A model generated the notes under the pieces. That model was not told the origin of the DNA and ran no database searches. It saw only the letters and a program-made list of their open reading frames with translations. Both the position numbers and the translations under genes were made by a program. A stretch of 64,000 bases of DNA from Diadema antillarum. Its lineage: Eukaryota. Each line of letters opens with the position of its first letter. Within the stretch, counting starts at the first letter, position 1. This document shows positions 9,916-13,490 of the stretch, one piece after another. The stretch covers positions 434,001 through 498,000 of the forward strand of contig NW_027272185.1 in assembly GCF_040938485.1 (NCBI RefSeq), read 5' to 3'.

Positions 9916-10992
9916 GGTTAAAGGGCTAGAAAGACCTCTAACGTTAACATAGTAACGGTTATACGGTATAGCCTAACGTTAGGTTCTATAATATATTGTT
10001 CCACTTTTAGCGTTAGTTTTACTTAAACCAGCAAGACCGATGCACTTACGTAACGTTAGTATATTTACTATAATTTCAATTAGATCTAGATCTAGATCAA
10101 GCATGTTAGAGTCTAGAGAATAGATCTAACATTACCACTGGTTAGCAGTCCTTTAACGTTAGGCTTTATCTTTTTGATGTGAGCGCTCTTCATATTTTTC
10201 GATTGATGTGAAAAGAGAGACTCAGAAACAGAGAGTAACACTGCTAGATAATCTAAATCTATTTTGTTTGGGTCACTAAAAATTATGATATCAATACATA
10301 GGACCCTATGTATCGACATTGCAATTGCGATCGACTGTGCGACAACATGATGTGGTTACAGCCAGGTTTTAACGTTGATATAGAATCTAGCGTTACATTA
10401 GTTTAGAATTAGAGTCTAACGTTAACGATAGGTTTATTCTAAATCTAACGCTAAACGGCTAGCACTTAGCACATTTTGAGATAAATTTCAGATAATTTAT
10501 AGATCTACGTAAAATACTTCCACAAAGGAGGCTGACAATCCAATATGACAATCCGAAACTAGGACCCCATAATAAAGACTAACAGAACGCACTCTAACGA
10601 TTAGATGATAGATCTAAAGTTAGGCCTAACGTATTAGTCTAACTTAAATAATAGATTCTAGGCTACAGTCTATAGGCCTACATGATCGTGTTTATTGTAA
10701 TGTTACTGCGATCAGCGCGCTCACTTCGTGAGCGGGAGGGTCGCGGGGCTACTAACATGTGTAATGTAACTTAGTTACAGTGGTTGTGCTGGTACAGCAT
10801 TCATGCCATGGCACACGTTGAATTGAAAGTTTGACTTACGCATTCATGGTTCAAATGTGTTTGTTTTTTCTTGTAACCTTTAGATCGAGATCTACTTACC
10901 TTTCTTTTGGTTTTGAAGGGACAGGTTTAAAATGAACTGCCCTCTACTTGAACAGACAGGTGCAGAAACTGCAACTCTACATCTGTTAGTAT

Positions 10993-11170
10993 AGGAATAA
11001 CGCATTCCGCGGAGTTGTTAAGCGAGTATGCAGAGTGCATGTACGAGAGGTTTCTTCTGAGCATGCGCACTCCACACGAGCCGGAGGCGAGTGTGGAGTG
11101 TGCATGCGAAGAGGAAACCTCAGGTGCACTGCATACTCGCTTAACAATGACGGGAAAATGCGTTATTCCT
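10993..11170 (+). repeat. 178-bp imperfect palindrome at the left end of the YR element
   Basis: Perfect arms 10993-11006/11157-11170 (14 bp) and 11015-11033/11129-11147 (19 bp). A 17-bp inner arm has one G.T pair, and the apex is GCC-GGA-GGC at 11080-11088. Confidence 0.95.
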
Positions 11171-11463
11171 TTTATAAGATGACTAAGTAATTTCAAACGC
11201 GAGGTGAATATACCTTGTATGAGAAAGAAATAATGAAATAAATCAAATATCAAAGATTTTGACATTGTACTTACCGTTGGAAAATGGTCCAGACTCCAGA
11301 GTAGGCTTTCTCCGAGATTATCCCAGCTTGTGCTGAATCTGTGATATGAGGTCTATTTCAAAGTTTCCAATCCAACACATGAAATTGAAAATGTTCCAAC
11401 TCTCAAGAATTCAACATATTTACAGCTATTTACAGCAGATCTGACATCTTATACTGCCTAGAT

Positions 11464-12760
11464 CTAGTTGTTGATAGTCACGTTACATCCGTGGAAGTGG
11501 AAAACGTTTCCACCGCTCTCCGAACGAACGTGACCGGTGTTCCTCCTGACCGTGATTGACGATCTCGACTGTGTACTAATAGTTTGGTTTTGGGTTAGAA
11601 CGCTGTTATCCTGCCGGATATCGCACTCATACTCGTCGCCCAGCTCCTGGTTCTTATTGTCCTTGTTGACATCCGAGTATACGCAAGTGGCCAACGATTC
11701 AGACATTTTTTCAGTTTCGTTTGGCTTGTTTTGGAATAGTGCTTCAGCGAATCTGCCGATTTGTGCCCGCTGACACTCTGGATATCGCGAGCCTCGTATC
11801 CACAGGCATCGAGAGTTGTGATGCTGGTTGCCCTTAGACAGTGATTGGTGTACGTTTGCTTGCATCCGGCCTTTTGTGACAGATTTTTCAGTTTGTTGCC
11901 AGTCGTGTTAATGCCTAATGGGGCATTGTCGAACCATGGGGTATCTTGTGCCAGCTCCTTCTTCGAAACATCTTTTGGCCTTTGCCACATCCAAGGGTTT
12001 TTGGGGTTCAACTTCGCTACATATTTCTCAAACGTGGCTACCGGACACCTGAAGTTTCACCCAGTTCAGGCATTTCAAACATCAAGCCAGCATCGGCTTC
12101 TCGGATGACATTTTCGCGGTTTTTTGTTAGAAAGTCTCTCATTTGCACGTATTTCCGTCCGGAATCATCTGCTTTGATGGTAAAGTCTTCAGCTTTCATC
12201 CCACGAATGTTCTCCCGTCCTCGATTACAGTAAAAGGTGAGAACGTCCAAGAAAACCTTATCCTGCAGGCCTCTGGGGGTGGAGAGGTCTAGTGACTCTT
12301 GTATCTTGCTCATGTCGTCTGACGAAATCACGGGTTTGTGTACAACGGATCCTTTACCTTCTTTCTTTGCCTTCACTTTCATCGCTTTGAAAACGCGGTT
12401 TGCTCGAGGAAACTTGCTGCTATCACCAATATCTATTCCATAGTTCTCAACAAAGTATCTCTGAACACCGAACCTAATGTTTTGTAGCGACCTTGTTTTG
12501 TATGATTCTCCATTGTCCTTCCTTATTCCAGAGTAGAATTTGGTCAAAAACTTGTCCAAATCTGTGGTATCCTTGGCGATTTCTTCCAAATCAGTTCCAG
12601 TGAATTTGACAAAGTCCATGAGTTTACTTTTAGCAAATTTCAATACCTTCTTTGTCCCTTTGCTGTCCATGTCATTTAACAGTCGGTCAATCTCTTCATC
12701 TGTCATAACTTGGAAGGAGATGGAAAAGTCCTCCTCCTTTGTTTGATTCACAGACGCCAT
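11464..12760 (-). pseudogene. Tyrosine recombinase (Crypton/DUF3504, KCTD1-ZMYM-QRICH1-like domain), two single-base frameshifts; about 432 aa when repaired
   Basis: Three ORF pieces join up: ...CNRGREN...TKNRE...GLMFEMP, then RCPVATFEKYVAKLNPK...NHCLRAT...SGHKSADSLKHYS, then KMSESLA...FHFHGCNVTINN. The R-K-HxxR-H-Y catalytic set is present. Frameshifts lie at about 12050-12060 and in the T6 run at 11706-11711. Confidence 0.88.
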
Positions 12761-13490
12761 ATCTAAAGGTTTCCGAATGAGTTGTGATTTCAAAACAGAG
12801 TGGACGCACAAAACAAGGCTGGCTACAGCGACGAAACTTAAGCCAATCAGTAATCTAGATCGTCGATCGTGAGATAGACTAGATCAAAGTCAGTAAAAAC
12901 GAGGAGCCATAAAAAAATCTTATTCCAGCAGGAGTTAATTTTTGATAGCACAAGTTTTAAATCCTATAAAATAACATGAGTGGTGGCCTTGAAACTATCT
13001 GGGTAAATGAAGAAATGTTATTCTTACTGAGTTTCCGCTGAAAAATCGTCGGTACGTCCCTGGCGATCGATGAATTTGTGTCATAAATTCAATTTCTTTT
13101 TCAACATGATCTGGTGGATCAGGACGATTTGAGTGTTGTGCCTGTGTACGGCAGACTGTCGTGGACCGGACACGAGTCAATTTTCGGTTAAACACAACAT
13201 TGAGTCTCTTTTTATATTACTAGTGCATGACTGAAATTAGTGTATGAAAAGTTCATTTTTCATTTTACGTGACCTCATTGAGCATAAGCTGGTACAAATC
13301 GAAATCTTGACTTTTGAGACACTGCGCATGCGCCAAAACCTTGAATTAGACAATTTGGGTGCGCGAAAATCCCACGGGCGTGCAGGGATAGAAACTTTTT
13401 CGCGAATGATCATGTGGTACGCTTTGACCAATCAGCAAGCTGGAAATTACTTAGCCATCTTATGATAGATCCTTTCATCATGGATGAACG

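Follow-up and report, generated by a model that had tools for sequence, protein, structure and literature searches.

A 64,000-nt window of the genome of the echinoid Diadema antillarum (RefSeq assembly GCF_040938485.1, contig NW_027272185.1, positions 434,001 to 498,000 of the forward strand; coordinates below are those of the window) contains a decayed transposon of the CryptonA type on its minus strand. The element lacks a reverse transcriptase (RT), and a tyrosine recombinase (YR) is the only transposition enzyme that it encodes, which agrees with the RT-less, Crypton-like element proposed in a preliminary description of this DNA. At the 3' end of its gene strand lies a cis-module, conserved across the clade, that comprises an internal complementary region (ICR) together with a structured hairpin of approximately 170 nt. 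The features of the window copy are as follows.

10990–13465, minus strand: complete element, a broken copy of the CryptonA type, bounded by the bases where homology begins and ends in about 19 copies
13443–13465, minus strand: arm A, the 5'-terminal 23 nt, complementary to A' of the ICR (inverted pair I2) and kept in all copies
11595–12760, minus strand: YR gene, broken, with open reading frame (ORF) pieces at 12760–12038 and 12011–11595 and a frameshift near 12050
11157–11194, minus strand: ICR, composed of A' (11172–11194, against the 5' end), a 2-nt core (11170–11171) and B (11157–11169, against the 3' end)
10993–11170, minus strand: 3'-terminal imperfect hairpin, stem of about 88 bp, apex near 11074–11094, supported by DNA folding and by covariation in seven families
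10990–11006, minus strand: 3' terminus, arm B' plus the terminal TATA, whose last nucleotides are not matched by the ICR
10987–10989, no strand: flanking TAG (CTA in gene orientation), first of two copies; the paralogous empty site at 25960–25968 has a single TAG
13466–13468, no strand: flanking TAG, second copy, as read in the window sequence

The reverse complement of positions 11157–11194 consists of 21 nt of the right end, 3 nt, and 14 nt of the left end, with one mismatch in an arm. The preliminary description had claimed such an internal inverted copy of the joined ends; its letters were confirmed, and a repeat search of the window recovered both inverted pairs (I2, 11169–11194 with 13443–13468, 88%; I4, 10986–11006 with 11157–11177, 86%). 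The match between the ends and the ICR of the window copy is far beyond chance. The long palindrome described between the two sites was also recovered, as the nested inverted pairs I1 and I3 and as the hairpin at 10993–11170 (z = -13.8). In gene orientation, the window copy begins with 5' TCATAAG and ends with CCTATA 3', the conserved 5' end being TTATAAG. Comparison of about 19 copies of the family shows T-ATAGG without variation at the left end and a right end that closes with TTATAA, beyond which the bases vary. The tetranucleotide ATAG, through which the ends had been thought to recombine, was rejected as a general crossover repeat or target duplication, because on the left it belongs to the conserved terminus and on the right it occurs, as it does in the window copy, in only a few copies.

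The YR is the only long ORF in copies of the window family, some of which carry it as an open frame of 353 codons. Its homologues are nearly all echinoderm proteins, including a Diadema antillarum gene model that is 97% identical to part of the query, and the catalytic residues R180, H306, R309, H332, and Y341 are invariant in 19 of them. Pfam matches to Phage_integrase, DUF3504, and QRICH1 all fell below the curated cut-offs, and the YR profile weakly matched XerA and the Tn1549 Int. The protein family comprises 17,176 representative clusters at E <= 0.001, and more than 100 further YR loci with 36–51% protein identity are present in the 1.75-Gb genome. The window family itself is represented there by at least eight long copies (2.47–2.66 kb) and at least 30 short derivatives (460–700 bp). 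These non-coding derivatives retain approximately 350 nt of the hairpin/ICR end and approximately 130 nt of the other end, and we count this retention of the ICR, hairpin, and 5' end as a sign that the module may be required.

The same layout, which in gene orientation reads 5'-A...YR...A'-AA-B-(hairpin of about 170 nt)-B'-3', recurs in at least seven diverged families of the genome whose arm sequences are unrelated. Families were scanned with a script seeking a downstream hairpin whose upstream neighbour complements a site upstream of the gene. An end-matching score of >=13 was reached by 19 of 29 YR loci, as against none of the same 29 loci in the opposite orientation; one of the scoring loci (L049) is probably a chance match, and the non-scoring loci include truncated copies. 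Within a family, independent copies lose homology exactly at the start of A (TTATA...) and at the end of B' (...GTATA, or ...GCTTA in one family), and across families the halves of the ICR pair with the first 11–31 nt and the last 13–20 nt of the element. Co-variation of the ICR with both ends, the check that the preliminary description had called for, was found across diverged families, and it extends to other species: the layout is present in Strongylocentrotus purpuratus, Patiria miniata, and Amphiura filiformis, as well as in two further eukaryote assemblies and one metagenome scaffold. It was not found in the octocoral (Paramuricea) fragment or the fish KIAA1958-like gene examined. The delimited elements of the genome span 2.05–3.1 kb between their ends and contain the YR ORF only. 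In every family, the junction of the conserved ends exceeds the complement of the ICR by 2 nt, leaving the terminal TA of the element unpartnered. The structure is real and, judged by comparative criteria, functional.

Depth measured on assembled Logan contigs of public runs gave, as a rough measure for one family, about 1400-fold the single-copy level for the terminal 200–230 nt and about 3.5-fold for the interior. For the family of locus L057 (G000:C1147:619485-623474, G000 being the 1.75-Gb assembly), contig depth suggests approximately 1000 short derivatives, and a TA in front of the 5' end and a CTAT behind the 3' end are common to many of its copies.

As single-stranded DNA, positions 10990–11196 fold with -72.6 kcal/mol (z = -13.8), and none of 200 shuffled sequences folded as well. 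When the last 215 nt of an element were joined in silico to its first 35 nt, every family yielded one hairpin with a stem of about 110 bp (z = -12 to -27), in which the junction faces the ICR across a 3x1 loop or a 2-nt bulge in all families tested. The pairing of the junction with the ICR, as the preliminary description envisaged it, is reproduced in this fold with its small unpaired core. An alignment of seven families contained 71 consensus pairs, of which 56 showed double compensatory changes and 11 were invariant. On the gene strand, the conserved unpaired positions have the sequence TC.TC; read on the antisense strand, 10 of 13 elements show Y-GA-R tandem mismatches on either side of a GNA triloop clamped by GC, in many cases GCGAAGC or GCGCAGC. 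The apex of the window copy has this form on the plus (antisense) strand, with a GNA triloop flanked by tandem GA mismatches. The sequence d(GCGAAGC) and tandem G.A pairs of the sheared type are both well-known motifs of very stable DNA hairpins, and with DNA parameters the antisense strand was the more stable in 12 of 13 elements. Separately, the only Rfam match was a weak one of the plus-strand hairpin at 11051–11117 to the mir-2068 precursor (score 25.8 bits, threshold 99; E = 0.014). This match probably reflects hairpin likeness only, and some annotated microRNA precursors could be Crypton hairpins.

The orientation of the hairpin was identical in 19 of 19 copies with distinct flanks; the segment between the junction and the ICR is therefore not inverted by recombination of the two. 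This bears on the alternative raised in the preliminary description, an inversion of the circle of the FLP/FRT type, and equally on a switch of this type in the integrated copy. Two inverted recombinase-type sites 150 bp apart are what such a switch would use, but in addition to the uniform orientation, the asymmetric motifs hold one polarity across seven families and other species, and, measured against the junction, the core of the ICR is shorter by 2 nt. We regard an inversion switch as highly improbable. The single orientation also rules out a parvovirus-like hairpin transfer. The preliminary interpretation has thus stood in part: the element type, the ICR, and the fold have been retained, and the ATAG crossover and the inversion have been discarded.

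A further reading is a DIRS-like retrotransposition in trans. The element would be transcribed, and an RT supplied by a resident DIRS or some other retroelement would produce an antisense, single-stranded cDNA whose ends would anneal to the ICR and be joined, after which the element's own YR would integrate the product. The topology is that of the DIRS1 ICR, with the 5' half against the start, the 3' half against the end, and the whole lying 3' to the coding part (PMC8969392, PMC3266345); moreover, the DIRS-1 ICR is essential after first-strand synthesis, its cDNA is single-stranded and antisense, and its RT acts in trans (PMC7192593). DIRS1-like elements have been reported from sea urchins (PMC3266345), and the DNA-hairpin motifs described above sit on the antisense strand. 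However, no RT was encoded in delimited elements (2.05–3.6 kb) of at least seven families and six other assemblies. Nor did these elements carry long inverted terminal repeats; the ends share only about 5–8 nt of similarity (TATACAA-type), and the 3' region is self-complementary instead. Additionally, the ICR is an inexact complement of the joined ends, lacking the terminal TA in every family, and therefore cannot template the real 3' end, which rules it out as an exact end template on the DIRS-1 model. Retrotransposition in trans is, in our assessment, improbable.

Six unoccupied sites were recovered, and at each the net insertion was compared with the conserved span.

Second element (25121–25738): empty site paralogous, 10767/10768; insertion equal to the span, no duplication
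L043: empty site on an allelic haplotig; equal to the span, no duplication and no microhomology
L052: empty site in near-identical repeats; equal to the span, with a 2-nt TA ambiguity
L057: empty site on a haplotig and, for two species, in the contigs of three runs; +3, CTA duplicated
Window copy: empty site in a paralogue, 25940–25989, with a single TAG at 25960–25968; +3, CTA duplicated
L018: empty site in paralogues at 87% identity only; -3 (weak)

These values (+3, +3, 0, 0, 0, and -3 nt) rule out a single fixed overlap length for all six sites. At two of the three clean empty sites, target and element have no base in common at the crossover. Cryptons are expected to carry short direct repeats (4–6 bp) at their termini, similar in all copies; of 30 insertions examined here, 5 have CTA at both flanks and 11 have it on the 3' side, and it was duplicated at none of the three clean empty sites. 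The flanks of the 30 insertions gave the consensus (S)TA/CTAT, which is close to the element's own junction, TA/TTAT. The insertion at L057 is polymorphic and therefore recent. Taken together, invariant ends, non-homologous targets, and the prevailing absence of duplication imply that only the product expected from the cut positions of one strand is inherited.

The second element in this list is a non-coding element of another family with the same layout (25121–25738, minus strand, 618 bp), with the ends TTATAAAATGGG ... CATCATTTGTATA, and the tandem-duplicated region 10740–10790 retains its unoccupied site. The empty site of the window copy lies downstream of the next paralogue of a G-protein-coupled receptor (GPCR), and its right flank is identical over 25 nt. 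Tandem GPCR paralogues (TRH-receptor-like) occupy positions 13491–27124 of the window. Two of the GPCR units, together with an apparent allelic copy on C147, hold the Crypton at the same place past the stop codon (L002, G000:C1297:420713-423186); the flank on the other side of the Crypton is unrelated between units, and a duplication or rearrangement breakpoint thus coincides with the 3' terminus of the element. Many loci in the 1.75-Gb assembly are double with near-identical flanks (e.g., C732/C712 and C1946/C759), so the assembly seems to include both haplotypes in part, and these provided the allelic empty sites. The L052 copy is nested in another repeat, approximately 840 bp long and abundant (G000:C501 and over 30 further places), with a TA microsatellite at its end. 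At L020/L021 (G000:C340:1096965-1097422 and C214), a short copy shows CCTGG where TATAGG usually forms the terminus, and CCTGG again past its other end, which looks like a rare insertion with target bases kept at both junctions; the flank of this L020 copy is not repeated.

In the accepted Crypton model, a double-stranded circle is excised and its junction recombined by the YR with a double-stranded target (PMC3212892); the ICR and palindrome would then be accessory double-stranded sites, either binding additional recombinase to promote synapsis or directionality or forming a cruciform in the supercoiled circle. Duplex sites are the normal substrates of YRs, the core of the junction has approximate dyad symmetry, and the target is similar to it, while the CTA duplication in two insertions recalls the short terminal repeats of other Cryptons. 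However, a staggered two-strand exchange at non-homologous targets predicts two product types, and only one was seen among the 30 insertion flanks with their invariant ends. The complementarity also reaches the very first nucleotide and extends over 11–31 nt in a family-specific manner, which suits base pairing rather than protein contacts, and the conserved mismatches form strand-specific DNA-hairpin motifs. We consider a wholly double-stranded reaction unlikely, albeit a serious contender.

The best-supported mechanism, to which we tentatively assign a probability of approximately 0.45, is recombination at an attachment (att) site formed by a folded single strand. One strand of the element, probably that antisense to the gene, would fold, with the hairpin nucleating the process and both termini aligning side by side on the ICR. 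The alignment would create a duplex recombinase site with a small unpaired core, from which the terminal TA bulges out. The YR would cut and join the discontinuous strand only, closing or opening a circle, and the circle would be joined to a target resembling the element's junction (TA/CTAT compared with TA/TTAT). Replication would complete the event, and the ICR strand, never having been cut, would remain internal. A similar arrangement is known from bacteria. In the CTX-phi attP(+) and in integron attC, one strand carries two inverted half-sites, which fold to give a duplex site whose core is unpaired or extrahelical; a single strand is exchanged, replication finishes the reaction, and the uncut partner lies approximately 100–150 nt inside the integrated element. 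The strand-specific hairpin motifs and the duplication-free insertions at invariant ends fit a one-strand reaction of this attC/CTX-like kind.

Several observations weigh against the folded single-strand site. The model does not predict the 3-bp CTA duplication of two insertions or the insertion at L018 that looks 3 nt short (judged against paralogues only), and it supplies no source of single-stranded DNA in the animal nucleus. Both strands are able to fold, and a cruciform in a supercoiled double-stranded circle would show the same site. Counts of G-T and A-C in the stems (15 and 11, respectively) revealed no strand bias, no head-to-tail junction was found in the assembly, and no single-stranded or circular molecule was seen, the 23 public runs covered being in the form of Logan contigs.

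No order of eukaryotic DNA transposons is less well understood than the Cryptons, whose ends are called hard to define and whose mechanism has been deduced by analogy only; they are also the source of domesticated DUF3504 genes (ZMYM2-4, QRICH1, and KIAA1958). Our analysis adds exact ends, a conserved cis-module that co-varies with them, a target consensus, signs of recent activity, and abundant short derivatives, which together open the mechanism to tests that use oligonucleotide substrates and marked donors. If the folded-strand mechanism is true, this would be, to our knowledge, the first single-strand YR recombination system in eukaryotes, and it might offer a compact tool for site-directed insertion. 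The module also ties Cryptons structurally to DIRS1 retrotransposons and bears on what the DIRS ICR actually does, as well as on the proposed origin of DIRS from a Crypton and a Gypsy-type RT (cited in PMC6681497). It is possible, and we suggest it with reserve, that a large clade of animal Cryptons transposes via a folded strand whose ends are aligned on the ICR, as a eukaryotic counterpart of attC and the CTX-phi attP, and that the DIRS ICR would then go back to a Crypton ancestor of this kind and be a recombinase site, not a device for repairing incomplete cDNA.

Among known systems, the fungal CryptonF and animal CryptonA elements share with the present families the compact YR-only architecture of 2–3 kb, the DUF3504/QRICH1-like protein, the non-autonomous derivatives, and the lack of terminal inverted repeats (PMC3212892). 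Unlike in published animal Cryptons, the ends are precisely defined here and tied to the ICR and hairpin. Kojima and Jurka (2011) found no terminal repeats in animal Cryptons and listed the CryptonA termini as not determined; a curation guide of 2022 and a CryptonA paper of 2026 give only short direct repeats for Cryptons and reserve the ICR for DIRS. In the literature covered, with Repbase entries and the review by Poulter and Butler (2015) outside its scope, no such hairpin/ICR structure was reported for Cryptons, and the structure is apparently undescribed for them.

The folded att sites of CTX-phi and attC show the same fold of inverted half-sites, which in our elements is predicted by in silico folding; those systems are bacterial, use Xer or IntI, and obtain single-stranded DNA from phage or conjugation, whereas the host here is an animal. 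Integrases of the Tn916/Tn1549 type are likewise YRs that insert without homology between element and target, the Tn1549 Int being the weak profile match noted above, but they leave variable coupling sequences at both ends, and both ends are invariant here.

The closest known structure is the DIRS1-type ICR of Dictyostelium DIRS-1 and DIRS1-like elements; the preliminary description drew the comparison with DIRS but leaned toward attC and CTX-phi. In both groups, the same block lies 3' of the coding region, its halves complement the start and the end of the element, and they meet at an A-rich core of a few bases, the DIRS1 ICR having a 3-bp junction. Both also show a trinucleotide that sometimes stands at both flanks and many insertions without target duplication (PMC7192593, PMC3266345, PMC8969392). 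Unlike DIRS1, the Crypton element is devoid of RT, RNase H, methyltransferase, and long inverted terminal repeats. Its ICR lacks 2 nt relative to the joined ends, while that of DIRS-1 is exact, and the stretch between the ICR and the end of the element is, in contrast to DIRS1, a hairpin of approximately 170 nt.

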